63,737 bases of DNA from Schmidtea nova (lineage: Eukaryota): the NCBI GenBank assembly GCA_044892505.1, contig CM097883.1:257734001-257797737 (forward strand). Direction: 5' to 3'. Made by a program: the position numbers and the translations under genes. Positions 24,649 to 63,737 of this stretch are shown in pieces; the stretch's first letter is position 1, and each line of letters begins with the position of its first letter. Below the pieces are notes generated by a model. The model worked only from the letters and a program-made list of their open reading frames with translations, had not been told where the DNA came from and searched no databases.

Positions 24649-24756
24649 TTTTATTAGGGTAAATAAAATTTTATTGGATTATGCACATGTAATTATGTAA
24701 TCACTATTAAGCGTATAATTAAGATCAATTTTTATTTTTTATTGAGATTGTGGAAA

Positions 24757-24793: not shown

Positions 24794-25257
24794 ATTAATA
24801 TATTTAAAAAAATGGTCTTCTCTTATTTATATGAATAAATTGCCATTTTTATTTAAAATAATAATAATAATAATAAAAATTTTTTTAAAACTTTGATAAT
24901 AACTGTAAAAGTCAATGGAAGGTTATGTTGTTGGAATGATGTAATTATATTGTGAGTGGTTTACGATGATTGTTCCTATCACTATTGAAATATATTTGTT
25001 TTTCGTTATGTGTCATTTTATGTTGGTATTGATAGTTATTGTAGAAGGCTGTAGCGCCCAGCAGAGTCTCCGGTAAAAGTCTGTCTCAGGACAGCTGGGG
25101 TGTATGCTATATAAATGTATTATGCGTATGTGCGTATGTGATTGAAAGCTTTAATCAAATAAACTAACAAATGATTATAATAAACAAAAGCAACTTTACA
25201 GAACGATTTTTATTTAATCAACTAATAAAAAATACTACTCACGGTGAATGGAATTAA

Positions 25258-27143
25258 TAACAAATATCTTCTTTATAATTTAATATTCCTTTGCAATTTT
25301 TCTTTTCTCTTGCTTGGACGATATCTTTTTGAATCTTCAATTTCCTTTTTTCGATCGTTGTTTTTGTCTTTTTGGCGACGTTTCTATGCTTCTTTTGGTT
25401 ATCAATTTCTTTTTTAAAATTTGGTAGATAGTTTGTAGCTCCTTAGTATCTTTTATAAATCATTTGTTTTTTAATTTCTTAATCAATTTCTTATTTTTAA
25501 ATTCTTATAGTAAATTTTTTATTACTATAGGAATTGATTATTTATTTGCTATTTTAATTTTTAAATTAAATTTTCAATTTTTATTATTATTTCAGGCAGA
25601 ATTGCCGAACATTACTTAATAATTAAAGGGGGTCATCCTATGTCCACAAGGACGCCTACCATAATAAATGCTAATTGAAGATAATAGAAGCAAAAAAATA
25701 ATAAAAATAACAACTATTTTGATATAACCTTTACAATAACATTTAAAATTATCACTGGTCTATAAATTAAAACGATAATAAAAATTTGGAAGAGAAAAAA
25801 CTAAATTTGATAATAGTTAAATTTATTAAATAATATTTATGTAAATCGCGCACTGTCGATTCTCCAAATTGGAGTTATAACATCTTTTCTATCTACTTTA
25901 TAACCCTGAATTTTTATATTAATGAACCATTGTTCTTGATCATTGTAGTCCACTGATTGAAACGCATCAGGAAAACGAGTTTTTCTGCTGTTGATCTAAA
26001 TTTTTTCTTTGCAACAAATATCTTCTTTATAATTTAATATTCCTTTGCAATTTTTCTTTTCTCTTGCTTGGACGATATCTTTTTGAATCTTCAATTTCCT
26101 TTTTTCGATCATTGTTTTTGTCTTTTTGGCGACGTTTCTATGCTTCTTTTGGTTATCAATTTCTTTTTTAAAATTTGGTAGATAGTTTGTAGCTCCTTAG
26201 TATCTTTTATAAATCATTTGTTTTTTAATTTCTTAATCAATTTCTTATTTTTAAATTCTTATAGTAAATTTTTTATTACTATAGGAATTGATTATTTATT
26301 TGCTATTTTAATTTTTAAATTAAATTTTCAATTTTTATTATTATTTCAGGCAGAATTGCCGAACATTACTTAATAATTAAAGGGGGTCATCCTATGTCCA
26401 CAAGGACGCCTACCATAATAAATGCTAATTGAAGATAATAGAAGCAAAAAAATAATAAAAATAACAACTATTTTGATATAACCTTTACAATAACATTTAA
26501 AATTATCACTGGTCTATAAATTAAAACGATAATAAAAATTTGGAAGAGAAAAAACTAAATTTGATAATAGTTAAATTTATTAAATAATATTTATGTAAAT
26601 CGCGCACTGTCGATTCTCCAAATTGGAGTTATAACATCTTTTCTATCTACTTTATAACCCTGAATTTTTATATTAATGAACCATTGTTCTTGATCATTGT
26701 AGTCCACTGATTGAAACGCATCAGGAAAACGAGTTTTTCTGCTGTTGATCTAAATTTTTTCTTTGCAACAAATATCTTCTTTATAATTTAATATTCCTTT
26801 GCAATTTTTCTTTTCTCTTGCTTGGACGATATCTTTTTGAATCTTCAATTTCCTTTTTTCGATCGTTGTTTTTGTCTTTTTGGCGACGTTTCTATGCTTC
26901 TTTTGGTTATCAATTTCTTTTTTAAAATTTGGTAGATAGTTTGTAGCTCCTTAGTATCTTTTATAAATCATTTGTTTTTTAATTTCTTAATCAATTTCTT
27001 ATTTTTAAATTCTTATAGTAAATTTTTATATTAATGAATTTTTATATTAATGAACCATTGTTCTTGATCATTGTAGTCCACTGATTGAAACGCATCAGGA
27101 AAACGAGTTTTTCTGCTGTTGATCTAAATTTTTTCTTTGCAAC
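25258..27143. repeat. 754-bp tandem array, ~2.5 copies (third internally deleted)
   Basis: caaatatcttctttataatttaatattcc at 25261, 26015 and 26769; third copy jumps to the unit end near 27024. Confidence 0.9.
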
Positions 27144-28747
27144 TTAAATTTTTATTGATTTTCATTAAAATCTTATTTACTGCAACAACATCTTCTTTAG
27201 ATATATTTGCAGCTAAACTGTCATACAATGAGTTGGTTAATTTGACCGGATACAATAATCTAAAAGGTATTTCTTCTACTAAGAAATAAATTTTATAGTC
27301 ATAATATACTTGGACTGGTTTGATTTCTGTCTTGATTTTTCTTTTAATTTCTTCTTTCTTGTTTTTTCACCATTTTTTGGTTTGTTAAAAATTTTATCGT
27401 AAGTAGGAAAATTTGCTTTGTGTGATTGCATTTTAATATTTATGACATTATCTAAAAATGGCTTTGTATTTATAGTCATGAGTTTATGTCTTTGTCCAAT
27501 GAAAATGACGCATTCACACTGTGTCTGTTATGCATGTGTGTATGTCTTTGTTACATGTCTTTGTTGCATGTGTATCTTTGTCAGATGTTATATATAATTG
27601 ATGCATATGTGCGTATTTTTATGTAGTTAAATGTTTTAGTTAATGTATTTCTTTAAAATGTTTATGTATTTAGTTAATGTTTATATTTCTTTATTTATTT
27701 GTCAAATTATTTGCCCAAATAATTTGATAAAGAAAACCTCTATATTAATAAAAAAACATATTAGTATTTAAAATAAAAAATTAAAAAACTGAACTTTAAT
27801 AAAAACTAAAACAAATTAAAATACGAATGATAATACATTTATTAAATGAAAACTAATAAAGGTAAATACAAATGATAACACATAAAAACATAAATAATAT
27901 CAATGAAAATAACATAAAACATATATACAATATATTCAATTATTGTTACGGTGATGATTGATTGCAATCAGTCATCTCACGATTGCATTGTTCGTAATCT
28001 GGAAGATCATCGGGAATATTGCGATGGCATTCATCGCAATCAGGTGATTCTGGCGATTCGTCGCATTGTGAAGATTTATCACATTGAACTAATTTGTCGC
28101 ATTCTGAAGAAACAGGACAATCAGCGGATTCTTCTCAATCCGGAGTACAATTGGGCCATCTGTTAGGTTCTTCTTCTTCCTCTTTTTCTTCTTTTGCGGA
28201 TTCTAACTCGATTTTTTCAGTTCCATCCTCAAAATTCATATACGGAACCTCTGAATTTGGTCAGTACAATGCCCGCATTAATAGGCACATATGATGTGCT
28301 CGGACATTAAAGGGATCTCAACATCCAGGTTTGCGGGGTGCTCTAGCAATATTTGATTGACGTCTATTCCCGTAATACACTGGATCTTATACAGGAATAG
28401 TTTGGGTGCTGTGTAAGTCAGCTGAGTCATCAAATTGGGGAATATTTCTTCCAGTTTGCTGAATAAGACAGCCATCAGCTTTTCTAAAAAATGTAAATTT
28501 TAAGAAATGATAACTTGTAATTTTTAATTTACAATTTTTTAGATTTTTTGATGTGAGACACATCGTAAATATAAATTATCATAAAATTTTCATGGTAAAA
28601 TTTTCACAGTAACAAACAACATGGAGAAAATAATACACACACATAACTAATCATATTCGAGTACACATAATATGTCTTTATTAAATAAATACATACATAG
28701 CCAATCAGAATCGTACATTACTATTGTAGGTTTATTGCAATCATGAG

Positions 28748-29248
28748 TCACACGATAATAAGAAATCTAAAATGTCTATCCTCAATAATTAATTTTATAT
28801 CGATAATAATATTATCAACTATATTACAATAATCCTTAGTTTTTAACTCTAATATAACTACTTTACCGCTAGTAAATATATTAACACACATAGGATTATA
28901 TTTCATAAATCTCAAAGCTGGAAATATTTCTGGCCCGTAAACACAGTCCAATAATTTAGACAAAGTATTTAAATTACAACAAAATCCCAGGTCTACCGTT
29001 ACAGGAATTGATTTTATTTTTAAATCATAAATCTTTACTTTTTCGTCACTTATAAATTCCTTGCATACCATAATTCTAAATCTACCATTTTTAAAATATA
29101 TTATCAAGTTCTTACCACTTCTATCAATAATTTGCTGTGTTTTCACCTTTTGGAAATTCACGTGAGATACATCAGTTTTACCCTTATAATTTATGTTGCT
29201 ATTCATTACTTTATTACTTATTTTTAAATATGAGAACAACAATGACAA
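28748..29248 (-). CDS. Divergent TATA-binding-protein-fold ORF inside the Polinton remnant
   Basis: VTVDLGFCCNLNTLS...YGPEIFPALRF...P.CVNIFTSGKVVI resembles a TBP repeat (YEPE.FPGL...IF.SGKVV); IIYFKNGRFRI as first-repeat trace; first ATG at 29206. Confidence 0.7.
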   Translation of the reverse strand: MSLLFSYLKISNKVMNSNINYKGKTDVSHVNFQKVKTQQIIDRSGKNLIIYFKNGRFRIMVCKEFISDEKVKIYDLKIKSIPVTVDLGFCCNLNTLSKLLDCVYGPEIFPALRFMKYNPMCVNIFTSGKVVILELKTKDYCNIVDNIIIDIKLIIEDRHFRFLIIV

Positions 29249-30290: not shown

Positions 30291-31584
30291 CGTGGTGCGG
30301 TCAAAAAGTTTCCGGCCTACCCCAGAAAAAGTAAATGCAAGAAAGCACAACTATATTTTTATCAACACCAATACCATTACTTCTCGAACCAATTACCTCC
30401 GGCATCTACACACTTCTGCCAACGACCAGGGAGGGCTTCGAATGCCCCATACTAAAATGAGGGTGGAAGCTGGTCAAAAATCCGATTTACAGCCTACTCT
30501 AAATCGCCTGCATCCATGAAATACTCTCCCCGCAGTTGATTCTTCAATTCCGTAAATAGGCAGTAATCTGAGGGAGCCAAATCAGGGCTGTATGGAGGGT
30601 GGCTAATGATTTCGAAGCCACAGTCATTGAATTTTGTTTGGGCAATGCGGCTGGTGTGAACTGGCGCATTGTCATGTTGAAACCAGTGAGGGAGACCATA
30701 TGGTTTTCGGCACTTTCTACGAGCTTGCTCAACGAGATTACCGTAATATTCTCCGCTGATTGTCCGTCCCTTCTCAAGAAAGTCGGTGAGGATCACTCCC
30801 TTATGACTCCAAAACACAGTCAACATGAGTTCCCGTCTGTGCGACATTCCGGAACGAGACTTCCAAACTTTTCCTTCTTCCGGCTTTCTCCATTCCATAG
30901 ACTCCCGCTTTGATTCAGGCTGATGTAGGGGTAACGGTGTCTCATCACAAGTGAGAATGTTTTGGATAAATCTTTCTCCATACTTGCGGTAAATGGCGAG
31001 GTTCATGAGACACGCATTCTTTCGGTTATTGCACATCTCAGTTGTCAAAAAGCGAGGCACAAACCGAGACACCACCTTGTTGAAGTTAAGGTCTTTCAAT
31101 AATTGCACTACGGTGCCGTGTGATATTTGTAGGGATTCTTCCAGCTGCCTGGTAGTTATACGGCGATCTTCCAGTACCATTTTCTCCAATTTTTCCTTCA
31201 CATCTTCATTTCTCAAAGTCTTTGGTCGACCCTCTCGTTCCTCATCTGACACACTTTGCCGACCCCGTTTGAATTCAGCAATCCAAAACTTGATGGTAGA
31301 CTGAGAGAGACACTTTTTGCCATAGGCTCGATTCAGATTTACCATGATTTCCTGGTTGGTTTAGCCGAGAAGAACACAAAAGCGAATAGCACTGCGATAC
31401 TCAATTTTTTCCAGCGAACGCACTTGCAATGACATTTCCATCTGCAACAGATAAAGTAAATGGATTAGGTCAATAATATTTTCAACATGAAATTGTCAAT
31501 AAATTTCCAATAAAATAAACCTATTTCCATTAAAAAATCAATTTGTTAAGTAGGGTATGTCGGAAACCTTTTGACCGCACCACG
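30291..31584 (-). mobile_element. mariner (DD34D) transposon, 1294 bp
   Basis: TIRs cgtggtgcggtcaaaa / ttttgaccgcaccacg; TA TSD at 30289-30290 and 31585-31586. Confidence 0.95.
30340..31345 (-). pseudogene. mariner transposase with premature stop at 30494
   Basis: FVPRFLT, TCDET, HDNAPVH, YSPDLAPSDY; C-terminal tail disrupted. Confidence 0.9.
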
Positions 31585-47599: not shown

Positions 47600-49817
47600 T
47601 GAATTGTCAGATCAAAAGAGGTTTAATATTTACATACTTTTATAATTAAAACAAATGTATTTTACAAAACATTATAATAATTTAAATTAATTTAAATTAA
47701 TTTAATTAATACTATTTATATTTAATTACACAAAGTTTGGTATGAAAGTACCAAATTTTAGCTGAATGTGCAATATTACTTATTGCACAATCTTTCAACA
47801 GTGTCTTAATTCTTTTCTCCTGGACCCCCATATTTAATAATAGATTCATTGTCTTAGGTTCGAATGATCCCAAGGAGCGAATTATACAAGTAAAAAATTC
47901 AACTTTAAAGTCTGGTTTAACTGCTTGTATCTCAGATCTTAGATTTTCGTATTTTTCCAAGTTTAGTTTGTCACTCAACTCAACGTTTGAAACAGAATCA
48001 ACTGGACATTTCATGTCTACTAAAAGTATTGTATTCGTTTCAGTATTTGTTATTAAAAAGTCAACGCGTTCAGTCGAATTCGGTGAAAGGGAACATTTGT
48101 GATCGACGACAACGAGTAAATTTGGATTTTTAAGTTCATTTTTGATTTTATCTATACAAGCATTGTGTTTATTTGTAGCTAAAGATTGATTGATTTTACA
48201 TTTTTGTAAAACGTGAAGTATCGTTTCATCCTCAGATTTACACCTACGACACAGATGATTCTCGCCAGTTTTATGTGGTTTGGCAAATGTTGAGAGAGTT
48301 TTGTTCGTGCATGATGAACGAATTTCCATTCGAATTCTGTCAAATCACTCCGGAAAATAAGCTTATTTACAAGAGGACAGAATTTAATCGCAGAGACGAG
48401 AAGATTACTATGATTACTCATTTCCCATTTTTCGAGATATGAAACTTGTATTGCAGAATGCAATATTTTTGACAACGCCTTTCTTAGAGTTGGTTATAAG
48501 ATGCGTGTGCCAGTTAATGTTGTAGTGATACGAATTGAAAGATTTTCTTTGCCAGTTTCAAATAATAGTTTGATGATGTGAACTCTGGCAAAGTAAGCAA
48601 TAGATGTTCTTAATCGGTAAAAGCGAGTTTTACCACCGCTGTGATTTTGTTTACTCTCTTTTCCATTAACCCATTCTAAAGAGTTGGATTTTTAATTTCA
48701 AGTCTTGGACTCGTAACAAACAAGAGTGAAAAGGTATTTATCGTTTTCGAGTATTTGCAAGGTGATTTTAGCAAACGATAAAAGTATACAATCGTCTATG
48801 CAAGCAGATCTATGCAACCAGCTCCACCAGTTTCCGTTGCATTATAAAAATAACTAATTTCATAATAGTTCGGTAAGTTTAAAATCTTTTTTAAATGGCT
48901 TCTCAGTAGACTAGTATTATTAACATTTATTCTTGAATTATTTTGGGGATTAGCAAAAGAACTGGTTTTTATTTCCCTAGTTCTAATTGGAAAAATAAGC
49001 CAAGAATGCAAAAACATTTTATAAGCCTTAAGTTTTTGCCAGCCATGAAGATCAGAATTAGCAATCTTTTTAGTGTCTTCAATGACTTTTCTGACGATTT
49101 CATAGGGACTTTGATGATTATTCTCACCTGTTGGTACACCCAAATATTGGTAAAATTCATTTGTCGTTATCTTTTTTATGTATTCTTTGTTGACATCAAT
49201 TTCACTTACAATTTCAACCTTTGGATATTGAATATATGCGCATTTTTCAGGACGATATTCAAATCCGATTTCATTAGCAGTACTGATAGCAATGTCTATC
49301 AATGTCTGTAAATTAAATGTATTCGTCGCGATAAGAACTATGTCATCTGCATAAGCCAACACTTGTACAGGAGAAGTCCTTATCATAAATGGATTAACAT
49401 TCGACAAGTTTATAGCTTCAAGAACTGGATTGATGGCTATTGAAGAGTATCATTGAGATTGGACAACCTTGCTTGACACCTTTCTTTTTCAGAATGTCTG
49501 GTGTCTGCGTTTTTTAGGCAATAAAATGAGCTTGTGTCTGTGTAAATTAGTTTTAATATCTTTTCACTAAACGTTCATGTGTCTTAAAAGTGTCCACATG
49601 TAGTCCTGTGGAACACTACCGAACGCGTCTTTTATGTCGAGCCAAGCTATAGTCACAGGTAAGGATTTACTATATTTCGATTGTTCGACAATCGCAGAAA
49701 GAATTGAATTATGTTCAATACATCCCTCGAATTCCGAACCACCCTTTTGGCCAACGTGTAATAGTGAGTTATTTCTGATCCACATATTAAGACGATAGTA
49801 GACAGAAGTGTGCACCA
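47600..49817 (-). mobile_element. 5'-truncated non-LTR retrotransposon with restriction-like endonuclease (R2/NeSL-type), defective
   Basis: WLDIKDAFGSVP, KGVKQGCPIS, YADDIVL, CCHC (CRRCKSEDETILHVLQKC), REL (RVDFLI...LVDMK...KY); frameshifts. Confidence 0.88.
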
Positions 49818-49973
49818 TGAGTCATCGCAGAACAAAGGAAATGACGTCATCGATGAGTCACCCATACCCCCGATGACTCACCGATGACTCGCCAATGACT
49901 CACTGATGACTCATCAATGACTCATTACATGACTCATTACAAATTTGAATTTTATGACGTCATCGATGACTCA
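49818..49973. promoter_or_regulatory. Array of AP-1/CRE consensus sites
   Basis: Eight perfect TGA(C/G)TCA plus two TGACGTCA in 156 bp, central run at 11-bp period; function not shown. Confidence 0.5.
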
Positions 49974-50336
49974 TTTCAAATTCAAATTTTAAATTTAAAT
50001 TTCCAAGGGTCAAATAAGGTCAAACCTTCAAACAAGGGTATCATTCGAAAGGTCTTGGAGAAGTCAATCCAACGGTCATACCCCCAAAGGTGTATGGAGG
50101 GTCCTTAACCTTCAAAGGGTCAAAAACCTTTAACCTTTTTCAAACCTTATAATATACATATCATTTGAAAGGTAAATAAAGGGTGCACACAATGATCATA
50201 CATTCGAAGGTCTATGGTGGGTGCTCAACCTTCGAAGGGTACAAAACCTTCAAACATTATTATATCATTCGAAAGGTAATTGTCAGGTAAATACGGTGTG
50301 TGTGTCTTATAAATTTTCCTACCCCAATTACAACAA

Positions 50337-50437
50337 AGACATTGCAATCCATGTGCAACGAAACCAAGACATTGCAATCCATGTGCAACGAAACCAAGAC
50401 ATTGCAATCCATGTGCAACGAAACAAAGACATTGCAA
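50337..50437. repeat. 30-bp tandem repeat, ~3.3 copies
   Basis: agacattgcaatccatgtgcaacgaaacca. Confidence 0.9.
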
Positions 50438-51030
50438 TATTAACAAAAACTAATCAAATTTTTTTATATATATTGTTGCGAACGTGNNNNNNNNNNNNNN
50501 NNNNNNNNNNNNNNNNNNNNNNNNNNNNNNNNNNNNNNNNNNNNNNNNNNNNNNNNNNNNNNNNNNNNNNNNNNNNNNNNNNNNNNNNNNNNNNNNNNNN
50601 NNNNNNNNNNNNNNNNNNNNNNNNNNNNNNNNNNNNNNNNNNNNNNNNNNNNNNNNNNNNNNNNNNNNNNNNNNNNNNNNNNNNNNNNNNNNNNNNNNNN
50701 NNNNNNNNNNNNNNNNNNNNNNNNNNNNNNNNNNNNNNNNNNNNNNNNNNNNNNNNNNNNNNNNNNNNNNNNNNNNNNNNNNNNNNNNNNNNNNNNNNNN
50801 NNNNNNNNNNNNNNNNNNNNNNNNNNNNNNNNNNNNNNNNNNNNNNNNNNNNNNNNNNNNNNNNNNNNNNNNNNNNNNNNNNNNNNNNNNNNNNNNNNNN
50901 NNNNNNNNNNNNNNNNNNNNNNNNNNNNNNNNNNNNNNNNNNNNNNNNNNNNNNNNNNNNNNNNNNNNNNNNNNNNNNNNNNNNNNNNNNNNNNNNNNNN
51001 NNNNNNNNNNNNNNNNNNNNNNNNNNNNNN

Positions 51031-51803
51031 AAAGCTTTATTAAGAATTTTATTGTCAAATGATTCGAGCAAAATGATTCGAGCAAAATGATTCGATATTA
51101 GAGACAATATAGCGATTTGACCAACATTGTGTGTCGACAGAACTGAAGGCTCATCGTAATGAAATAATAAAGTTTCGAAAATAGAAAGGTCACAATTAAA
51201 GTTATCTAATTTCACAAATTTGGCACAACCATCAGGTTCGGCACCTGGTTTTGCAGACGAGAATCCTTTATATCCTAACTGAAGCATTGCTGGTTCGATG
51301 TCAGATAAGTAATATGAAATTTCAACTTCTTGGAGACAGAAAATGTCACAATTTAAATTCTCCAGATCCTTCTTAATATTTATCCATCGAATTGGCCAGT
51401 CAAGAAATCTCTGATCGCAATTTTCATAAAGAACATAACCATTAACCAAATGACATTGAGCCAAAATATTGAGACTGGAACTCATCATTTGAAAACCAAA
51501 TTTCCCGAACCATAGCATAGAAAACTTCCTTTTAAAACAAATTCTTCCATTCAAAATTTCATATCCAAACTTAAAAGACCGAAATTTCCCGAACAGTTAA
51601 ACTAAATTGCAATATTTAAACAATTCCAAAAATTCTACCTGAAATTCAATTCTCAAATTAATTACAACTCGAACGCGCACACAGACGCGAATAAACACAA
51701 CACCACAGACGGTGAGGGAAAAACGCGCACACAGACGCGATAAGTTATTAACAAACGCACAAAAAACAGCCAAAGTTTGCTCAGGCAAACCTTGGCTGAA
51801 ACA
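51031..51803 (-). repeat. BEL element 3' LTR (contains Angel-like fragment; distal end in gap)
   Basis: Starts TGTTTCAG directly after the polypurine tract; matches 62991-63726. Confidence 0.85.
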
Positions 51804-51817
51804 TTTCCTCCCACCTT
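51804..51817 (-). other. Polypurine tract of BEL element
   Basis: aaggtgggaggaaa immediately before TGT. Confidence 0.75.
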
Positions 51818-51867: not shown

Positions 51868-53562
51868 TCAATTCCTAACTTTATTTTTCCACTTCGGCTT
51901 ATACTTATATCTGTCACTGAACTTTTCTTCAGCCAATAATCCTCTCATGGTATCCTGGATACACCCCCTCCAACATATGGACATTTTTATTTCCAAATTT
52001 ACTGTTGCCAATTTATCGTTAATATCATTTACATATCTCGTTCCCACTGCTAACATTTCTTCAGTTTCCGCACAATTATTTATTTTTTCTTCTAATCTTT
52101 TAATTTCACTTTTATATTCCAATTCGCCCGTTTTTATTTTACTTTCAAGATTTTCTATCCTTGAATGAAGTTGTGTTACTAAATCCGACTTATCAACAAG
52201 AACTTCATTATCAACAGTTGAACCATGATCAACTTTGTCAAATGATCCAATTTTATCGTCACTAGCTACATCTTTACCTTCTATCGGAAGATAAGCTGAC
52301 TGCTCACTACCTGTTTTCTCTGCCATTATAACTGGACAATTTATTCGTTCAATCGTTTCTACTTTTTCACATTTAAATCTGACATTTTTTATAACTTTTC
52401 CATTATCTTCTAGATTTGTTTCACTTTTATTAACTTTTCCCTCGTCACTTTTATCCACATTGGAATTTTCCACTATTCCTTGCCTAATATTTTCACCATT
52501 AAGGGAATTCTCTCCAATGATTTCCTCAAAATTACAATTTTCTTCAATATCGCTAATATTTTCCACAATTTTCTCATCGACAATGCAGTTTTCTTCAAAA
52601 TTATTCTCATTTACTGCCTGCTCATTTTTTACTGACATTGTAGATTCAATTTTCGTCATTACTTCTTGCACTAAATCGTTTGAAGAAGTATTTATTCCAT
52701 CCTCGTTTGCAATATCAACCGACTCAGAGTTATCAACCATTTTACTAGACACACCACTATTCACTGCGCTATTCTTACCTCGACCTGAAATCAAAACGCC
52801 ATCACTAGTCCGAACCTCCCCAAGAACTACTTCCTGAGCTTTAGGTGCAAAACTCTCGATACATTCCTCTTCACACTGTTCTCTTTGACAAGTCTCCATT
52901 AACAAACTTTTATTCTCGGCTGTCTTTTTACTGTCATCCATTTTACCAAATATGTTATCATTTATTGTGTTATCTTCATTTTGACAAAACCTCATGTTTT
53001 CTGTATGTGTTTCTTCAACTTCCTGGTATCGTTGGAGCTGTTGTTGTGACACTTCATTCGTTGTAAAATATGATTGAATGAAGTGAGTCTGTCCACAGCT
53101 CGGAATGCCTGATCGTTCTTTCCCGATGCAAGTCCATCCCAATGGAGTTAACCTAGCTATCGGTTCTCCTTCACGTCCCCATATCTCTTTAATTGCTTTT
53201 TGTAGACCTGCATAGTCAGCCCCAAGAAGCGCATCTACCGATAATCTACTTCCAGCCGTTGCAAATCTGATTCGTCTCAAATGGTCCCAGTTCTGACTTG
53301 CTTTTTTCCAATCGGTCACTCGCAAATCACTTGTTACCTTCTCTACCGACCAAGCATGAAATTCTTTGACCATCATACCATTTACACTCATTAAGTTCAT
53401 TGTGACTCTCTGCGCCTCCAAATTTTCCCTTTTGCCTCCTATTACTCTAACTGGAACATTAACTTTTGATCCTGATAATTGTAATTCTCTAGACACATAC
53501 ATACTAACATAACTAACCGTACTTGCATCATCTAGTAATGCGTTAACATTATTCTTTTTCCC
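51868..53562 (-). CDS. BEL aspartic protease followed by long acidic low-complexity region in place of RT-RH-IN
   Basis: NVNALLDDASTVSY, ALLGADY, PIARLTPLGWTCIG, then ~400 aa E/N/K-rich sequence; frame is -1 relative to gag. Confidence 0.75.
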   Translation of the reverse strand, partial: GKKNNVNALLDDASTVSYVSMYVSRELQLSGSKVNVPVRVIGGKRENLEAQRVTMNLMSVNGMMVKEFHAWSVEKVTSDLRVTDWKKASQNWDHLRRIRFATAGSRLSVDALLGADYAGLQKAIKEIWGREGEPIARLTPLGWTCIGKERSGIPSCGQTHFIQSYFTTNEVSQQQLQRYQEVEETHTENMRFCQNEDNTINDNIFGKMDDSKKTAENKSLLMETCQREQCEEECIESFAPKAQEVVLGEVRTSDGVLISGRGKNSAVNSGVSSKMVDNSESVDIANEDGINTSSNDLVQEVMTKIESTMSVKNEQAVNENNFEENCIVDEKIVENISDIEENCNFEEIIGENSLNGENIRQGIVENSNVDKSDEGKVNKSETNLEDNGKVIKNVRFKCEKVETIERINCPVIMAEKTGSEQSAYLPIEGKDVASDDKIGSFDKVDHGSTVDNEVLVDKSDLVTQLHSRIENLESKIKTGELEYKSEIKRLEEKINNCAETEEMLAVGTRYVNDINDKLATVNLEIKMSICWRGCIQDTMRGLLAEEKFSDRYKYKPKWKNKVRN

Positions 53563-53760
53563 TTCGATTCTAAAATGATAGGTATCGTCCTGAGGCTTAT
53601 GTAACCCATATCATTTGACTTTCTATTTGTAACCATTCTAGTAACATGTGTTTGGGGTTTTTGATTGCTGTCCTCTTCTGATTCCTTTTCTCTTCGACTA
53701 TGCAACAAACTATGATGTTTTCCCTTACAGTCTTTTTCCTTACAAAATCCTGGTCTGGTG
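53532..53760 (-). pseudogene. BEL Gag C-terminal remainder (third zinc knuckle)
   Basis: TRPGFCKEKDCKGKHHSLLH continues [14 protein letters not shown] across the Gypsy insertion. Confidence 0.85.
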
Positions 53761-54483
53761 TGTGGTGATTCATGCATAGGCATCTGACCACACAGGTTGT
53801 ATGTGTCCAATTGACATTTTGTGGTCGCCTATATTTTGTAATTTTTGTAAAAACTTTCAATTAATTTTTATGTTTGTTGATATTAATATTAATATTAATA
53901 TTGGTGTTGATATTAATATTGATTGTTATTGGTGTTAAGATTAATTTTAATTGTTGTATGAATATGAATATTAATATTAATATTAATTGTTATGAATATT
54001 AATTTTTTGTAGAAAAAGAAAAACTTTGGCGTATTTATAAATAAACATTTACAGTGTTAAAATTGTTTTAATTTCAAATTAAATATTATTTCCAAGTTGC
54101 AAATATTACCTGATTTCAAAAGAATATCACATTTAGAATAATGAATATAGAAAGTAGCAATGAAAAATATTATCCCATAGCTGTTCTAATTGAAGAACTT
54201 AGAAATGATGATGTTCAGTTGCGATTAAATAGCATAAAACGCCTAACAACTATATCATTAGCACTGGGTGCTGAGCGAACTCGATCTGAATTAATTCCGT
54301 TTCTAACAGAAACTATATACGATGAAGATGAAGTCTTGCTAGCTCTTGCAGAACAATTAGCCAATTTCATATCTTATGTTGGTGGACCAGAATACGTTTA
54401 TACCTTGTTACCACCTCTAGAAAATTTAGCAATCGTAGAAGAATCAATTCAAAAGCAGCGGATCCCGGACGTCGTAACCCACA
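53761..54483 (+). repeat. Gypsy 5' LTR
   Basis: Matches 59632-60354 except G54381/A60252; overlapping TATAAA (54036) and AATAAA (54040). Confidence 0.95.
54141..54443 (+). other. Captured intronless fragment of PP2A 65-kDa scaffold subunit A (first HEAT repeats); second copy at 60012-60314
   Basis: [25 protein letters not shown]...[29 protein letters not shown]...GGPEY...[13 protein letters not shown] closely matches PPP2R1A residues ~1-101. Confidence 0.95.
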
Positions 54484-56096
54484 AAATGGTGTCAGAAGTG
54501 GCAGAAGGTATTCTTGTTTCTACGTCTCTAAATGCGCGAGACGAAGTCGTGCGACAGTCCGGACCACTGGAGACTCATACTCCTACCACTGCGGACGTCT
54601 GGGCCAGATTTGTTGATGTCCAGCATGTTTCTCTCGTGGCAAACTACGATCTCCTCACTATCCGAGAACTTTACTTTCAAGGTAACCACATTATGTTAAA
54701 TATTGTTCACCTTTTCAATTTGTGTGGTCTAGGCTTTTTGTGTGTTGTCGCCACATTAACACCCTTACCTGTTCCCTTATCCGGGGGGTCTAACCTCAAT
54801 ATACATAAAGTACCTTGCACTGACATAATGGCAAATGATCAGGGCCATGCCGCCCTACGTGCTTCTGAGGGTTTTGTTTTTGTCTCAACATCAGACAAGA
54901 ACCGGATACTTCCCTTTAGTTTAAGCCTATCCTTTAAAGGACTTCTCAGTTACCTAAAATATGAGAAAAATGTTTACATAAATGACACGTATGCTACATA
55001 CAGGGGTTTTGTACATAGATTCGACGATCGACCCTTATATGAGCATATAAATGCTGGCGACACTATATATTTGCGGTACCGTATGCGCGGGGGCGCAGAC
55101 AGCGACAATTCGTCTGTTTCAGACCAACCGCCTTCGCCTGGGACTACACAGCCAGACATCCCAACATCAATGCACAATTTGCCCAAGATTCCGTTCTTTT
55201 TGGATCAGAACGGATCTCCAGCATCCTGGTTTTTTGTACTGGAAAGACATTTTAGGATCAGGACAATCATATCATCCTCCGAAATGTTCGACCACTTGAT
55301 CACCTGTTTGCAAACGGAACTACTTTCGAAATTGGCTCATAATTTCTTGACCATTTCTACTTCTGCTGACCCGTACACAGCTCTTAAGAATCTAGTCCTC
55401 GAGAATTATCGCGAACCTAAGGCCGATATTTTCTCGCATTACTTCAAGGCACAGTCTCTCGGGTTACAACGTCCATCCGAATTCCTCAAAAGAGCCATTG
55501 ATAACCTCGAATCCTTACAACAAGGTATCACTACCGACGACTCTCTGCTTCGTAGATTTTTTTTGTCGGCTTTGCCACCTCAGACACAGGCAATATTGGC
55601 AGTTACGGAGTCAACCAACCTCCGGGATCTCGCCAATATGGCAGATAAAATCGCCGAAGCATCGGGCGTTAGCACTTCGCAACAGTGCAACCAAGTCAAT
55701 TCGTTTGAGACTTTAGCCGCTGATACAGCCAGTTCAGCAAAGCGAAACATCCAGAGTTCAGATATCGTTTTGGCTGCAATTGAGCAGATATCTGATCGAT
55801 TGAAGAAAATTGAGGCTCGGGATGAAAGACGGTCATCTCCGCACAGACGCACCTTTTCTCGTGAACGTTCTTTTCCCCGTTCTAAGAAGATTTGCTACTA
55901 TCACGAAAGATTCGATAGAAAAGCTCAAAAATGCCACATAGGTTGCGAATATGCAGACAGGAGTTCAAGCTGTGAGCTTTTAGATGTCTGCGTCTATCAT
56001 GGGAGATACAGGCAAGCAGCCAAATACTGTTTAGAAGGCTGCAGGTATTTCAAAAGTAATCCAGCACCGCAGAACAAGTCACATCCAAAAAACTAG
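54141..56096 (+). CDS. Chimeric ORF1: PP2A scaffold A N-terminal fragment, linker, ubiquitin-like domain (RMRGG), CsRn1-type Gag with two CHCC motifs
   Basis: 651-aa uninterrupted ORF from an LTR-internal ATG; Gag with [18 protein letters not shown] and [18 protein letters not shown]. Confidence 0.88.
54487..54501 (+). other. Primer-binding site complementary to tRNA-Leu 3' end
   Basis: TGGTGTCAGAAGTGG is the complement of CCACTTCTGACACCA, 3 nt after the LTR end. Confidence 0.85.
54870..55094 (+). other. Divergent ubiquitin-like domain immediately before Gag
   Basis: 75 aa, FVFVST...YRG...[24 protein letters not shown] follows the ubiquitin pattern IFVKT...FAG...[25 protein letters not shown]. 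Confidence 0.68.
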
Positions 56097-56135
56097 TCTC
56101 GCCATCTCTGTACGCGGCATGCACAGATGGCAATC
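56087..56135 (+). promoter_or_regulatory. Programmed -1 ribosomal frameshift signal (gag to pol)
   Basis: A AAA AAC (56087-56093) just before the gag stop, 7-nt spacer, hairpin gccatct...agatggc; -1 frame open into FLVDTGS. Confidence 0.85.
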
Positions 56136-59100
56136 TCTTTTCTTCTTCCCTTTCTTTTTCATTTTTTGTTTCCGCCCAAATTATTTCACCTCTCTGTACA
56201 GACATAGCACGCAACACCATACAATTTCTAGTAGACACCGGATCTAGCATCTCTCTTTTGCCCAAGTCATTGTACAGACCATGCCAACCGGGCAAATTAC
56301 ATTTGAGAACTGCCAATGGCAACCAGATGTACACTTCTGGTACATGCAACATCACACTCCGTCTGCTTGATCAAATAGTCAATTGGACTTTTCACATTGC
56401 GGAAGTCACACACCCGATATTAGGTATTGACTTCTTACAAGCGTACAGCATTACGTTAAATTGTGAGCAACACAGTTTATCATTCTCCAAGCCGATTTCA
56501 GCTTCTTCCAATGAACTTAAAACGAGTCCCAAACCTTCTTCCTGCAACGCAAAAGCCTTTGCGGTCGACAGCATTCATAATGATTTTGTTAAGAATCTCA
56601 GTTCACACAACATTTTTTCGGACATTGTGGGACCAATCAAAAGAGAAGTCAGCTCGAACTTCTGTCACGAAATTACAACTTCCGACTCGCACCCTCTCAG
56701 AGAGAGAGTTCGTCCAATCTCGGAAGACAAATATAACTTTCTCAAGACTGAGTATGAATCTCTTTTGGCTAGTGGCATTATCCAACGATCCTCCTCACCT
56801 TGGGCCTCACCCATTCACTTCGTGACCAAAAAGGATGGATCTTATCGGATATGTGGCGATTACCGCCGCCTTAACAACATAACGCAGCACGACTCTTATC
56901 CGATGCCACTCATTAATGAATCTCTGACGCGTTTCTCTAACTGCAAGATTTTCTCTACATTTGACCTAGTCAAAGCTTATCATCAAATCCCTGTTGCTCC
57001 ACGGGATGTACCAAAAACAGCCGTCATCACTCCAATCGGTCTGTTCGAGTTCTTGCGAATGCCTTTCGGCTTGCGTAATGCAGCACAAACCTTCCAAAGG
57101 CACATCGATCACATCTTGTCAGATTTAAATTTTGTCGTCGCGTACGTGGACGACATATTAATCGGTTCCCCCGATGTTGAGACTCACAAGGCACATCTAC
57201 GTAAGCTCGTAGCTACATTAAACAAAAATCAATTAAGAGTTAATTTGTCTAAATGTAAATTTTTTCAACATCAAGTTGATTTTCTTGGACACACACTATC
57301 TGCAGACGGAATAGCTCCACAATCAGCTCGTTTAGAATCCATCAGGAACTTCTCTAAGCCTGAAACTGTAACGCAGCTTCGCAGTTTTTTAGGTGTTGTC
57401 AATTATTGTCATCGATTCATACCAAATGTTTCGAATGTTCTCGCTCCATTGACATCACTCAGCTCAGGACCGAAACGTTCCATCGTAAAATGGACAGATA
57501 AATCCAATGCTGCGTTTGGAGAAGCAAAAAGAGCACTCGAGTCAATTCAGACTTTAGCTTACCCAAGGCATTCCCTTCCGTACAGCCTAACGACAGATGC
57601 ATCCGATGTTGCAGTCGGAGCTGTCCTAACTCAGTCACAAGACGGAATAGTTCGACCTCTCGAATTCTTTTCGAAAAAGCTAACCGAAACACAGACTAGA
57701 TATTCAGCTTTTGATCGCGAGCTCTTAGCCATCTTTCTTTCGGTTAAGCACTTCAAACATCTGCTGGAAGGAAAATCCACCACGGTTTATACTGATCACA
57801 AGCCGTTGGTTCACATAACTACAATGAAAGATCCTTCTCCAAGGCAATTACATCAAATCTCCTTTATCACAGAGTTCACCAGTGATATCAGACATATAGC
57901 TGGAAAGGATAACATCATAGCTGATTTTCTGTCTCGCAGTACAAACGCAATTTCGTTAGGACCTTTATTCACTACTTCCACTCTACGAGATAACAAACCA
58001 ACAGAAGCCGATCTTCGGTATTTTCTACACAATAAATCAAATATCGACGGAATCGATTTTGACTCCTCACTCTCAGGTGTACTTAGACCAATTCTTGGAA
58101 CTGAGCTTCGTCGACCCGCATTTCATGCAGTTCATAACTTACACCATCCTGGAACAACAGCCACTTATCAGCTGCTAAGAAACCAGGTCGTTTGGCCTTC
58201 TATGAGGCGAGATGTGAAACTGTGGGTTAGCGAATGTCTAAAATGTCAATGCAATAAAGTAACCCGACACATCAAACCACCGATCACGCACTTTCCAACC
58301 GGTAACCGGTTCGATGTCGTTCACATCGATCTTGTTGGTCCTTTGCCGATAGACAACGGTTTTTCATATCTTCTAACCATGATTGATAGGAAGACAAGAT
58401 GGTTTGAAGTCGTTCCTCTACGATCCATATCAGCAAATATTGTTGCAGAAACTTTTATATCAGAATGGGTCGCACGTTATGGCATTCCAAGACACATAAT
58501 TAGCGATCGAGGAGCCCAATTCGAATCGCAACTCTTCACTTCTTTAACAGAACAGCTTGGCATTAAACGGCTGCGTTCTACAGCTTATCATCCACAGACG
58601 AACGGTCTCATTGAAAGGTTTCACCGGACACTCAAGCACTCGCTCCGAATACTCTCTTTAAATCATCGTTGGACGAAAGCCTTGCCTTTCGTTTTATTGG
58701 GTTGGAGGAACACACCTTCTAAGACGACTGAGTCATCCCCAGCTCAATTACTCTTCGGTACCAACACTACGGTACCTAACGAACTAATTGACTTAGGAAA
58801 TGAAACAACACTCGAAGAACTTGGCACCGCCAGACGCCATTTCCTGGATATTGATAGCAATCCTATATTTTCGTCTGCCAACGCACACAAACCTTTTATA
58901 CCAAAATCTCTATCTTCAGCCAAGTTCGTTTGGATCCGCACAATCTCGGACTCAGCGTTGAAGCCTAGGTATACTGGACCTTATCGCCTACTAGGCATAA
59001 TCGGAAATTACGCCACTGTCAAGATGAACGATTCATCTGAGACAATCGCTCTGGCACGAATCAAACCAGCTTTTGGATTATCGGAATTCTTAGACTATAA

Positions 59101-59506
59101 CGCCAAAGAATTCATTCCAACCCCTACAGATAATTCCTTCCAATCTGATGACACCTCTCCAAGTACCAGTCTTCCACGATCTCAGCCGGACTTGGATAGT
59201 AAAATTCATTCGCCAACAACTCCTACTGAGGACACTACGTTATACCATTCCGATTTCTCTCCTACAAACCTGGACCAAGCACCTTCGCACTCTGATGGTA
59301 CTCACATTACCGTTAGACCCGAAACAAGCTCTTCACCTGCTTGTAGCGAGTTGCCAACTCCAGTTCCAATTTTGAAGAAATTGACACAAGTTCAACTTCC
59401 ATCAGGATCTACTAGGAAGCGCCGTGTTTCCATCAACCCGTGGGTGCGCGAACGTCGTATTGGGGACAATCCCAATGCTCCCACCAGACTCCACCGCATT
59501 TTTTGA
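56093..59506 (+). CDS. Gypsy Pol (protease-RT-RNase H-integrase), intact
   Basis: FLVDTGS, YVDD, FDRELLA, HHCC finger, HIDLVG / SDRG / ERFH, YTGPY; no stops. Confidence 0.95.
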
Positions 59507-59620
59507 AACGCATCCTCTCAACATTCCATCATTTTCTTTCTTCCTTCTTTTTCTTTTTCTTCTTTTTTCTTTGCCGCCAACACATTCTTTTCACCACACA
59601 CTACTGCTCCGCAGCTTTCG

Positions 59621-59631
59621 TAGGGGGCTAA
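59621..59631 (+). other. Short polypurine tract of Gypsy element
   Basis: tagggggctaa directly before the 3' LTR TG. Confidence 0.65.
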
Positions 59632-60354
59632 TGTGGTGATTCATGCATAGGCATCTGACCACACAGGTTGTATGTGTCCAATTGACATTTTGTGGTCGCC
59701 TATATTTTGTAATTTTTGTAAAAACTTTCAATTAATTTTTATGTTTGTTGATATTAATATTAATATTAATATTGGTGTTGATATTAATATTGATTGTTAT
59801 TGGTGTTAAGATTAATTTTAATTGTTGTATGAATATGAATATTAATATTAATATTAATTGTTATGAATATTAATTTTTTGTAGAAAAAGAAAAACTTTGG
59901 CGTATTTATAAATAAACATTTACAGTGTTAAAATTGTTTTAATTTCAAATTAAATATTATTTCCAAGTTGCAAATATTACCTGATTTCAAAAGAATATCA
60001 CATTTAGAATAATGAATATAGAAAGTAGCAATGAAAAATATTATCCCATAGCTGTTCTAATTGAAGAACTTAGAAATGATGATGTTCAGTTGCGATTAAA
60101 TAGCATAAAACGCCTAACAACTATATCATTAGCACTGGGTGCTGAGCGAACTCGATCTGAATTAATTCCGTTTCTAACAGAAACTATATACGATGAAGAT
60201 GAAGTCTTGCTAGCTCTTGCAGAACAATTAGCCAATTTCATATCTTATGTTAGTGGACCAGAATACGTTTATACCTTGTTACCACCTCTAGAAAATTTAG
60301 CAATCGTAGAAGAATCAATTCAAAAGCAGCGGATCCCGGACGTCGTAACCCACA
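59632..60354 (+). repeat. Gypsy 3' LTR (contains PP2A-A fragment)
   Basis: 723 bp, offset 5871 from the 5' LTR. Confidence 0.95.
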
Positions 60355-63300
60355 TGGTGCATTCTCTCACTCCATGTCCTTTCCTTAAGCAGTTATAACA
60401 TAATCTCCACTCTTGAACTAACTTTTTTCTGTCATTTACTGGCAATTGTTTGAATTGTGAGCATTGATCTAGATAATGTGCACCCGGACATTGGAAACAC
60501 ATCGACCTGCTTTGACCTTGTTGCATGATTATTCCTTCCCCACCTTTACTCGAGTTTTGTTTTACTTCATTGCCCGAGTTCGTAAAGTGTGAGTACCGTC
60601 TATTGTCATTCTTTTCGGAAGCCTTGAAGTTCTTCTGCCCATACTGCCAATTAGAGTCTTTTTCACGCCAAAATCCATATAATATCTCATTTGTCGATCG
60701 CGTAAGATCAGCTTCGTTTTGCAACCTCTCTTTTAACCGGGTTATTGATTCTTCCCCTTCATCTTTCGCTTGCTCTCTTTTCCATCGAATAAGTAGCGAA
60801 GCTGGCAATTTCTTTAACAATTGTTGCAAGAGACAGCCTCTCTGTAAGTCCTCTTCCCTTCCGATTGCTTTAAACCGTACCTCCATTGACTCCAACAATC
60901 CAACGAGAATATCCAAGTCTTTCATCTCTACTTCGCGAACCGGTCGAAATTTCTCTACGGTCTCTAACATAGTCAGATAACTACGTTCTTCACCTCCGTA
61001 ACGCCTTTCTAATTTCTCTTTCGCCATCTTGTAGCCATCGGCGGTATAACCCAGTGGCTCTATCATTCTCAGCGGCTCATCTAGCAAGTACTGCCTAAGA
61101 TGCAGCATTTTATCTTCGGCTGTTCCATCTGCCGTATCTATTACCGTATTGAAGGCCGCTTTCCACGTCTCAAACTCGACAACCTTCCCATCGAAAATCG
61201 GAATCTTTATTTTCTGCAACCGATTTAAACTCTTCTTTTCTCTTGGCGCTTCATATTCCGATGTCTTTGACCCCTCGCTCACAACACTTTGTTCTGTTCT
61301 TTTTTGCATTATCTTATCTATCTCTTCTTTTTTTGTTTCCAGCTCACAGATATCTTTTTCCACTAATTCTAACTCCTCCTTCTTGTTTAATTTGTCACAC
61401 AGCTCGACAAGTCTTAACCAATCTTCCAATGTATCCTCAAACTCTTTTTCATATAATACAAGTGTGTCCTTTATTTCCCCGACCATTTCTGCCAACAATA
61501 AGTTACGCGCTCGAGTTACTTTCCATTTTTTAGATCGCCGACGGGTCCATAAACTTTTGAACTCTTCCTCATCATTACCACCTCTTAAACGAAGAACAAG
61601 ATGAAGAGTAGATTCCTTTTGTATGTTGTAATCTGCCAAGATTCTTCCGCCTTCCAATTGTTTACCCGCAAATATCAATCTCTGTTGATCAGGTGGGATT
61701 CCCTCTTTATCTTGTATTCTCGTTTTTACCTTTTCTATTGTGTCACTTGATTCAACTTCCAGGGTAATGGTTTTCCCTGTTAACGTTCTTACAAATATTT
61801 GCAATCCCCCTTCCATTCTCAAAACTAGACCGCGAGTTGATTCCTTGGTGGGAATAGTCGTATTTCGATTAATTAACTTACTGAAAACGCCGCCCAGAGT
61901 TTCAACACCCAACGAAAGCGGTGTAACATCTAGCAATAATACCTCAATCACATACTCAGCAAGAACTCCTCCCTGTATTGCTGCACCCATTGCAACAGCT
62001 TCATCTGAATTCACACTCTTGCTAGGGGCTCTACCAAAATGTTTCTGCACAGTTTCTTGAACTTTAGGCATTCTTGTCATCCCACCAACTAACAACACTT
62101 CTTTAATATCCGATGTTTTTACCTTTGCATCTTTAATAGCCTTTTCACAAGATTCAATTGTTCTCTTAATTAGGTGCTCCACTAATTGTTCTAACTTTGA
62201 CCGTGTGAACCTTAAACTCAAATGTTTAGGTCCCGTATTATCCATTGTCAAATATGGAAGATTAATGTCCGTTTGAATAACCGATGACAATTCAATTTTA
62301 GCTTTTTCAGCTGCTTCTCTAACTCTCTGTAAAGCCATAGGGTCTTTATCAACATCAACGCCTTGATCACATTTAAATTCATAAAGAATATTTTGTAAGT
62401 GCACATTATCAAAATCTTCCCCACCCAAAAACGTATCCCCACTTGTAGATTTTACTTCAAAACTATTATTCAGATTTTTTATATAACTATCTAGCTTTAG
62501 CTTAATGATTTCCCAGTTGAAACACCCATAATTGATTTTAAATCCATAATTTTTAACCTCTCGCCCTATCTCTCTAATCATCGCTGTATTATAAATTATT
62601 TCTTTTGGAACACACTCCTTATTCACACAAGTCCCACCCATTTTATTTTTTCCAATTAAAGGAACAGATTTCCTATATTCATCTGCTCTCCTGGCTCGTT
62701 CATCCCCCAATTGAAAAGAATGCTGGGGCCCATAGCAGCATCTTTTCCGGTCCCTTAATGGACTCAACTCACCGCAAAACTTGTCAAAGGGCAGAGGGGA
62801 AAATGTTTCAACACAGGATAAAAATTTACAATTCATAAAATAATGTTCAAAGATATTACAAAAATACAGATTAAGAAAAGGTACCTTGTTCTGGCTGGAT
62901 AGCCAGAACAGTATTGCCCATGTTCCGAGAAGTACGTGGTCCCCCGATGGGAACCACGCTCTGCTACCAAAAATGATTCCATCAAAACGCAAAGCTTTAT
63001 TAAGAATTTTATTGTCAAATGATTCGAGCAAAATGATTCGAGCAAAATGATTCGATATTAGAGACAATATAGCGATTTGACCAACATTGTGTGTCGACAG
63101 AACTGAAGGCTCATCGTAATGAAATAATAAAGTTTCGAAAATAGAAAGGTCACAATTAAAGTTATCTAATTTCACAAATTTGGCACAACCATCAGGTTCG
63201 GCACCTGGTTTTGCAGACGAGAATCCTTTATATCCTAACTGAAGCATCGCTGGTTCGATGTCAGATAAGTAATATGAAATTTCAACTTCTTGGAGACAGA

Positions 63301-63556
63301 AAATGTCACAATTTAAATTCTCCAGATCCTTCTTAATATTTATCCATCGAATTGGCCAGTCAAGAAATCTCTGATCGCAATTTTCATAAAGAACATAACC
63401 ATTAACCAAATGACATTGAGCCAAAATATTGAGACTGGAACTCATCATTTGAAAACCAAATTTCCCGAACCATAGCATAGAAAACTTCCTTTTAAAACAA
63501 ATTCTTCCCTTCAAAATTTCATATCCAAACTTAAAAGACCGAAATTTCCCGAACAA
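60320..63556 (-). CDS. Chimeric polyprotein: Angel-like, glutathione reductase, mitochondrial-type HSP70 and ubiquitin fragments fused to BEL/Pao Gag; truncated by the Gypsy insertion
   Basis: 1078-codon uninterrupted frame; first in-frame ATG at 63478; domain motifs listed in the sub-features. Confidence 0.9.
60360..61576 (-). other. BEL/Pao Gag
   Basis: [21 protein letters not shown]...KMLHLRQYL...KEKLERRYG; [13 protein letters not shown] and [14 protein letters not shown]. Confidence 0.9.
61577..61804 (-). other. Captured ubiquitin unit, 76 aa, intact LRLRGG
   Basis: [18 protein letters not shown]...[14 protein letters not shown]; nine differences from canonical animal ubiquitin by eye. 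Confidence 0.97.
61844..62461 (-). other. Captured intronless fragment of mitochondrial/DnaK-type HSP70
   Basis: [80 protein letters not shown]. Confidence 0.95.
62462..62710 (-). other. Captured fragment of glutathione reductase (redox-active disulfide region)
   Basis: ARRADEY...[21 protein letters not shown]...YGF...FNWEIIK.K.DSYI..LN aligns with GSR GGTCVNVGCVPKKVMWNTA...FNWRVIKEKRDAYV. Confidence 0.88.
62952..62969 (-). other. Primer-binding site resembling initiator tRNA-Met 3' end
   Basis: TGGTAGCAGAGCGTGGTT is the complement of AACCACGCTCTGCTACCA, 4 nt after LTR-terminal CA (62974). Confidence 0.8.
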
Positions 63557-63731
63557 TTAAACTAAATTGCAATATTTAAACAATTCCAAAAATTCTACCT
63601 GAAATTCAATTCTCAAATCAATTACAACTCGAACGCGCACACAGACGCGAATAAACACAACACCACAGACGGTGAGGGAAAAACGCGCATACAGACGCGA
63701 TAAGTTATTAACAAACGCACAAAAAATGACA
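62974..63731 (-). repeat. BEL element 5' LTR (start tentative, near window edge)
   Basis: Direct repeat of 51031-51776; ends ...GGAATCA before the PBS; possible start TGTCA at 63731. Confidence 0.82.
63059..63454 (-). other. Captured fragment of an Angel/CCR4-nocturnin family (EEP) gene; second copy at ~51099-51494
   Basis: LNILAQ...LYENC....LDW..RW..I...L....CDIFCLQEV...LGY...PDGCA...NVGQIAIL most resembles the ANGEL N-terminal half of the EEP domain. Confidence 0.85.
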
Positions 63732-63737
63732 TTGCTC

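Follow-up and report, generated by a model that had tools for sequence, protein, structure and literature searches.

A candidate ubiquitin release module between a leader of host-derived fragments and Gag in a planarian BEL/Pao retrotransposon

In this study, we analyzed a window of 63,737 nucleotides from the planarian Schmidtea nova (assembly GCA_044892505.1, contig CM097883.1, positions 257,734,001 to 257,797,737 of the forward strand), in which a defective retrotransposon of the BEL/Pao superfamily with long terminal repeats (LTRs) carries host-derived coding pieces ahead of its Gag. All positions below are those of the window. On the minus strand, a single reading frame holds, in this order, an Angel-like nuclease piece, an open spacer, pieces of glutathione reductase and mitochondrial HSP70, a ubiquitin, and the BEL/Pao Gag. 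In the reading that we consider probable, the stretch ahead of ubiquitin is a replaceable leader of captured host mRNA pieces, a start in the LTR keeps the frame open, and deubiquitinases free Gag at the Gly-Gly end of ubiquitin. On sequence evidence, the ubiquitin-Gag junction is conserved in distant BEL/Pao relatives, and the pieces upstream of it vary.

One open frame from the LTR into Gag

The leader-ubiquitin-Gag open reading frame (ORF) runs from 63556 to 60320 on the minus strand, comprising 1078 sense codons and a single terminal stop, and its first in-frame ATG is at 63478. Because the Angel-like piece lies wholly inside the LTR repeat, the first in-frame ATGs (from 63478) are LTR sequence, in agreement with the original prediction, which had placed the start of the frame in the LTR. 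If translation of Gag is initiated at the first AUGs, it would have to traverse the whole leader. The prediction had also assigned the interval 60320–63556 to one BEL ORF. The interval is indeed open, but the stop at 60320 is not the BEL/Pao element's own, because a Ty3/gypsy element is nested in gag and the stop lies within the LTR of that element.

The two other minus-strand frames contain 76 and 106 stops over the span of the ORF. Shuffling of the 660-codon leader gave a mean of 51 stops and a minimum of 28, against the observed 0. A 92-codon stretch without homologs (aa 191–282, nt 62711–62986) is likewise open, and zero stops occurred in 0.5% of its shuffles (P about 0.005). Most of this stretch falls in an open spacer at 62699–62949 on the minus strand, which has no recognizable homolog and gave no match in a Pfam search. 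The openness of the leader far exceeds chance, which bears out the earlier claim that the frame has been maintained.

Database searches confirmed each of the four host pieces that the original prediction had joined to Gag in one ORF, and its coordinates for them were right to within a few codons. All four lie on the minus strand. The first is the N-terminal part of an Angel/CCR4/nocturnin-type EEP nuclease (aa 32–164, nt 63065–63463), for which human ANGEL2 is the top PDB match (E 1e-17); it is located inside the BEL/Pao LTR, and comparison of the window with itself revealed a second copy in the 3′ LTR. The second is the N-terminal part of glutathione reductase (aa about 287–365, nt 62462–62698, E 4e-15). 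Glutathione reductase outscores thioredoxin-glutathione reductase as its source, and its redox motif is altered. The third is an internal piece of mitochondrial HSP70, or mortalin (aa 366–571, nt 61844–62461, E 6.5e-95), which is colinear without gaps with mortalin residues 217–424; gap-free colinearity with the source proteins extends across 77 to 208 residues in the host pieces. The fourth is a complete ubiquitin of 76 residues (aa 585–660, nt 61577–61804, Pfam E 8e-28) that directly abuts the N-terminus of Gag. It matches canonical ubiquitin at 67 of the 76 residues and differs at nine, and its C-terminal LRLRGG is intact and followed by a residue other than proline. Between the HSP70 piece and this ubiquitin are 13 residues (nt 61805–61843), a degenerate remainder of the C-terminus of an earlier ubiquitin repeat, with the last eight aligning to the repeat end. 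The retention of this tail marks polyubiquitin as the source of the piece. The junction between HSP70 and the ubiquitin tail falls at a Lys-x-Ser common to both parents, a slight hint of microhomology.

A protein search with the whole ORF returned genuine mitochondrial HSP70s only and no protein with the same mosaic; the best matches were Dugesia japonica mortalin and one further planarian contig protein. The HSP70 piece (206 residues) is 86% and 85% identical to two planarian mortalins, which are 93% identical to each other, and 75–79% identical to those of other flatworms and animals. At 135 sites that are invariant in 12 real mortalins, the piece has 10 changes, whereas the real proteins have 0–2 each in a leave-one-out comparison. 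Therefore, the HSP70 piece derives from a planarian mortalin and is now under relaxed constraint. Taken with the AT-richness of the sequence, this points to a triclad flatworm as the likely source. The only planarian mortalin DNA that we found is an intron-free contig of indeterminate type. The proposed host derivation of the pieces is thus upheld by the sequence comparisons, and their origin from spliced mRNAs, as also proposed, is presumed. As partial domains, the leader pieces are unlikely to function as proteins. All identified pieces seem to come from abundant housekeeping mRNAs, which fits recombination with co-packaged cellular RNA.

Ubiquitin at the Gag N-terminus of distant relatives

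A word-based search with the Gag region yielded one weak match, the relatives being too distant for this method, and a profile search with the ubiquitin-Gag alignment was swamped by polyubiquitins. A Gag-only query, ended at the nested insertion, gave 5935 matches among 1.84 billion cluster representatives, many of which are full BEL/Pao polyproteins with Peptidase_A17 and integrase. We inspected the N-terminal architecture of the best 150 of these 5935 matches, nine of which extend to the extreme N-terminus of Gag. In six of the nine (P0121, P0122, P0135, P0148, P0185, and P0213), a ubiquitin domain or its C-terminal part abuts Gag, and each of these proteins represents a separate 50%-identity cluster. 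A seventh relative, P0132, starts with eight residues that resemble a remnant of the ubiquitin C-terminal tail. The relatives without ubiquitin start with a Met located 3–25 residues ahead of the same Gag position, which places ubiquitin at the native N-terminus of Gag.

Pairwise identity among the ubiquitin-Gag proteins is 18–38% in Gag and 34–75% in ubiquitin. Across the six relatives and the window protein, the last Gly of ubiquitin and Leu73 are each present in 7/7 and the penultimate Gly in 6/7. The Gly-Gly position is followed by Asn, Ser, Gly, or Met but in no case by Pro; the residue is Asn in the window (61574–61576, minus strand) and Ser, Gly, or Met in most relatives. The composition of the leader is variable, because P0135 carries an HSP90 fragment (Pfam E 1e-11) upstream of ubiquitin and not HSP70. 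P0185 has 77 residues without assignment in this place. In an AlphaFold model of the window ubiquitin-Gag piece, built with the ubiquitin-Gag relatives, ubiquitin forms a confident beta-grasp fold with a predicted local distance difference test score (pLDDT) of 80–89, which superimposes on 1ubq with a TM score of 0.97 and a root-mean-square deviation of 0.9 Å. The last four residues of ubiquitin form a low-confidence tail, followed by a confident long helix of Gag, and the model thus predicts a flexible tail leading into the Gag helix.

These relatives bear on the original explanation of the mosaic, according to which four fragments were captured serially from spliced mRNAs by template switching of reverse transcriptase (RT), the junctions stayed in frame only through the LTR start, and ubiquitin had no special role. 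The single open frame beginning in the LTR, the gap-free colinearity of the pieces over 77 to 208 residues, and the Lys-x-Ser common to both sides of the HSP70/ubiquitin junction would all be expected of such a history. However, the ubiquitin-Gag junction is common to relatives with only 18–38% Gag identity and with differing pieces upstream, and the Angel piece is LTR sequence rather than an internal insert. The claim of four equivalent captures ahead of Gag therefore holds insofar as all pieces are in the Gag frame, but one of them belongs to the LTR and another, ubiquitin, appears to be a conserved module of the lineage. Serial capture without a role for ubiquitin keeps some plausibility, and we regard it as rather improbable; what that account left out is the likely role of ubiquitin in freeing Gag.

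Release of Gag and the competing readings

We propose that the long frame starts in the LTR within the host-derived Angel-like piece, crosses the LTR end, a stretch resembling a primer-binding site (PBS), the spacer, and the glutathione reductase and mortalin pieces, and arrives at a complete ubiquitin that is joined exactly to the N-terminus of Gag. Host deubiquitinating enzymes would then cut behind the Gly-Gly, leaving Gag with a near-native N-terminus. Everything 5′ of ubiquitin would be disposable, and the leader could be rebuilt from fragments of abundant housekeeping mRNAs, since it need only give a start codon and remain open. This model would account for the tolerance of arbitrary partial domains, incapable of folding or functioning, in the upstream part, since ubiquitin lets host enzymes free Gag; for the variation of that part next to a constant ubiquitin-Gag; and for the better conservation of ubiquitin than of Gag and the other fragments. 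Selection would operate via the translation of Gag. The host pieces were presumably acquired through co-packaged mRNAs and RT template switching, and we speculate that host 5′ exons may have entered the LTRs when a strong-stop template switch landed on a host mRNA at its 5′ end. Deubiquitinating enzymes process all natural linear ubiquitin fusions, and linear fusions with an intact Gly-Gly are cleaved quickly in eukaryotic cells. The ubiquitin-Gag fusion would presumably be cleaved by host enzymes in the same way.

A close known parallel comes from a cytopathogenic pestivirus, in which ubiquitin C-terminal hydrolases of the cell cleave at a captured cellular ubiquitin that functions as a processing signal (PMC8310069). 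As in the window, host ubiquitin lies directly 5′ of a viral protein and its cleavage gives an authentic N-terminus (PMC8310069), and a short piece of another host protein is also found upstream of ubiquitin. In contrast, the pestivirus insertions are sporadic, strain-level events of RNA recombination in an RNA virus, whereas here the fusion seems conserved across deep divergence in a retrotransposon lineage and its cleavage is presumed. Polyubiquitin and ubiquitin-ribosomal protein fusions are likewise linear fusions in which a Gly-Gly end precedes a mature protein, and the window even keeps the tail of a preceding repeat; unlike in these natural fusions, ubiquitin is followed by the Gag of a retroelement and preceded by a mosaic of unrelated gene fragments. 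Retroviral Gag-onc fusions, gene fragments in plant LTR elements, and Drosophila telomeric elements share with the window the presence of host coding pieces in an LTR-bounded unit, in frame with Gag. The difference from these cases of host-sequence transduction is that several unrelated pieces are strung before Gag here, with one of them in the LTR supplying the start codon. The planarian giant Burro gypsy-like elements have polyproteins that include host-like domains (PMC6431247), but in Burro complete accessory domains are embedded in a giant polyprotein, whereas the window has truncated pieces in a leader before Gag. The DUF1759 Gag, zinc knuckles, protease region, LTRs, and polypurine tract of the element are those of BEL/Pao elements of flatworms and other metazoans (survey PMC3118150), from which the window copy differs in having no RT, RNase H, or integrase. 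That survey mentions neither ubiquitin nor host genes (PMC3118150). No account of a ubiquitin-Gag fusion, whether in BEL/Pao elements or in other retrotransposons, turned up in our literature search, a negative that is not proof of absence.

If release by ubiquitin is correct, a retrotransposon lineage has co-opted a universal host processing system and obtains Gag from an upstream start without a protease of its own or a precise start codon for this step. It would also explain the persistence of long in-frame mosaics of host fragments and would give the ubiquitin insertions of pestiviruses a natural counterpart among retroelements. The LTRs themselves carry host coding exons plus start codons, and the leaders could serve as a tractable record of the host mRNAs recombined into retroelements in planarian cells. 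For genome annotation, such leaders carry the risk of being mistaken for paralogs or pseudogenes of HSP70, PP2A, eIF4A, or ubiquitin.

Several observations weigh against the release of Gag by ubiquitin. Asn, with which the cleaved Gag of the window would start, is a destabilizing N-terminal residue under the N-degron pathway. One relative has Glu-Gly in place of Gly-Gly, and in ten further Gag relatives whose N-terminal extensions are long, no recognizable host domain precedes Gag. The ubiquitin-Gag relatives are short metagenome or transcriptome contigs, and the features of the window copy, which is dead, may partly reflect decay. Furthermore, the divergence of ubiquitin does not follow that of Gag, and the closest Gag relatives of the window have the most diverged ubiquitins. 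Because of this discordance, a single ancient capture of ubiquitin is not assured; the sequences would be accounted for equally well if ubiquitin had been captured repeatedly or refreshed from the polyubiquitin mRNA of the host.

The better conservation of the ubiquitin fold and surface residues than of Gag, together with the loss of Gly-Gly in one relative, would also be understandable if ubiquitin stays on Gag, marks it for degradation, or directs its trafficking or assembly, much as ubiquitin on retroviral Gag is tied to budding. Nevertheless, Gly-Gly is kept in 6/7 proteins and the last Gly in 7/7, proline never follows it, and fusions with an intact Gly-Gly are generally cut rapidly in eukaryotic cells. 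We therefore consider retention of ubiquitin on Gag, or a use other than release, unlikely.

The element nested in the BEL/Pao gag carries a second leader of host pieces. It is 6594 bp long (53761–60354, plus strand) and fits Ty3/gypsy in its domain order, its TG...CA LTRs, and its 5-bp target duplication. The LTRs (53761–54483 and 59632–60354) start with TG, end with CA, and have 1 difference in 723 bp, which suggests that the element is young. The target duplication is TGGTG at 53756–53760 and 60355–60359, and a PBS-like TGG stretch and a polypurine tract are present. All coding features of the element are on the plus strand. ORF1 (gag, 54141–56096) opens in the LTR, and the pol ORF (56258–59506) encodes RT, followed by RNase H and then integrase. 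ORF1 begins with a piece of the PP2A scaffold subunit A (PR65) at 54141–54461 (E 4e-52), which is present in both gypsy LTRs; since the piece is colinear with human residues 6–107, the first codon of ORF1 corresponds to the N-terminus of PP2A-A. A piece of the eIF4A C-terminal domain (54531–54677, E 3e-5) follows in frame between the LTR/PBS and Gag. Farther downstream, a stretch ending in RMRGG (55044–55094) lies just upstream of the gypsy Gag, whose DUF7041 domain is at 55215–55421. With hhalign, the RMRGG stretch aligned to the last 17 columns of ubiquitin only, with a local P of about 1e-3; the BLASTP match (E 0.5) and the single-sequence AlphaFold model of the region (pLDDT 43) were both weak, and a Pfam search of the gypsy leader gave no match. 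This stretch is possibly what remains of the C-terminal end of a ubiquitin.

Thus, a BEL/Pao element and a gypsy element at one locus have a common design, namely an LTR host exon with a start codon and in-frame host fragments before Gag. As a tentative extension, which we think possible though doubtful, one or more superfamilies of LTR elements in planarians, and perhaps in a wider range of hosts, would combine a freely evolving, LTR-initiated leader module with a release module of captured ubiquitin that host deubiquitinases cleave to free Gag, and the nested gypsy element, with its PP2A-A/eIF4A leader and the RGG-ended stretch before Gag, would be a second, convergent case. The leader module in this extension would be put together from 5′ ends and internal parts of abundant host mRNAs and would supply the start codon and promoter-proximal sequence; it may also provide mimicry of host mRNA against small-RNA silencing. 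A related explanation holds that the host pieces are useful as RNA, as camouflage or hostage against small-RNA silencing, and is compatible with release by ubiquitin. That all identified pieces in two unrelated elements at one locus come from housekeeping genes is in its favor, and it has a precedent in the Drosophila telomeric retrotransposons, which carry captured host gene fragments for which a role in silencing has been proposed (PMC13534243). However, mRNA abundance accounts more simply for the bias toward housekeeping genes, and the pieces are under relaxed constraint. We rate a role as RNA about as low as the retention of ubiquitin on Gag.

The N run adjoining the 3′ LTR and the departure of the 5′ LTR from the window might point to a chimera of the assembly or to a host fusion gene that became domesticated. 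Both readings are hardly credible, and we rejected them, because the Angel piece is duplicated in the two LTR copies, the LTRs of the nested gypsy element have perfect TG...CA ends and flank-matching 5-bp target repeats, and the same ubiquitin-Gag architecture occurs in independent data sets, in one case with an HSP90 piece.

Anatomy of the BEL/Pao copy and other features of the window

The BEL/Pao coding region (51868–63556, minus strand) consists of the leader, ubiquitin, Gag, a protease-like region, and an E/N-rich tail, and is broken by one nested insertion and one frame change, the latter in the gag-protease region. The coding parts on either side of the nested element were compared separately and never joined. 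All features of the element described here are on the minus strand. The 5′ LTR (62974–63737) runs off the window end; its identity to the 3′ copy is confirmed as far as 62991, and we propose that its inner end is the CA at 62974–62975. The 3′ LTR (51031–51803), which holds the second Angel-like copy, starts with TG at 51803 and is cut by an N run at 50487–51030. In the self-comparison of the window, the pair 51031–51766 and 62991–63726 is 99.3% identical over 736 bp, with five differences, and beyond a small indel the similarity carries on as far as the window end. The window end conceals one outer end of the element and the N run the other, so that a target-site duplication is not visible. 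A polypurine tract, AAGGTGGGAGGAAA, lies at 51804–51817, immediately upstream of the 3′ LTR. The PBS-like stretch (62950–62969) starts with TGG four bases past the proposed LTR end and is translated within the ORF; a tRNA scan of the window found no tRNA gene to match with it.

Long helices are predicted from the start of the BEL/Pao Gag at 61576. The DUF1759 core of this Gag (aa 788–930; core at 60767–61195, Pfam E 2e-9) is followed by CCHC-type zinc knuckles. Past the nested element, the final part of Gag and an aspartic-protease-like region (53000–53560), which corresponds to the protease segment of full-length BEL/Pao polyproteins, show 32–50% identity to such polyproteins. The minus strand downstream of the nested element gave no match to RT, RNase H, or integrase, and a Pfam search of the downstream ORFs was likewise negative. 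Their expected place is occupied by the E/N-rich ORF of about 380 codons (51868–53000), which has no relative in Pfam or PDB. The RT-RNase H-integrase part is therefore deleted or replaced, and the copy is a defective, non-autonomous derivative whose membership in BEL/Pao is assigned from the descent of its Gag, protease, and LTRs only.

Close to the element, remnants of a non-LTR RT resembling that of long interspersed nuclear elements lie just outside the 3′ LTR side of BEL/Pao (47712–49900, minus strand), with a YADD in the ORF at 48796–49407, and 30-bp tandem repeats (50332–50438) directly precede the N run that cuts the 3′ LTR. A strongly GC- and AT-skewed stretch at 17426–18742 holds, on the minus strand, decayed remnants of RT and RNase H of the Ty3/gypsy type. 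A Mariner/Tc1-type transposase ORF of 283 codons with helix-turn-helix and DDE domains is located at 30494–31345 (minus strand); looking up its exact protein sequence returned no record. The only clear host exon identified in the window is an aminotransferase class I/II exon at 6408–6767 on the plus strand (Pfam E 7e-13). An ORF with a TATA-binding-protein domain (28748–29248, minus strand, Pfam E 2.5e-10) may be an exon of the host or one more fragment that was captured. A perfect inverted repeat of 322 nt (arms 23697–24018 and 24351–24672) lies within a longer, 92% identical inverted pair at 23560–24808 that adjoins an N run and may represent either a foldback element or an artefact of the assembly; a 225-codon ORF (23971–24648) without a Pfam match spans the repeat. 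On either side of this inverted pair are a 17-bp minisatellite of about 15 units (22025–22279) and a tandem array (25259–27152) with a period of 754 bp and three copies of 90–100% identity.

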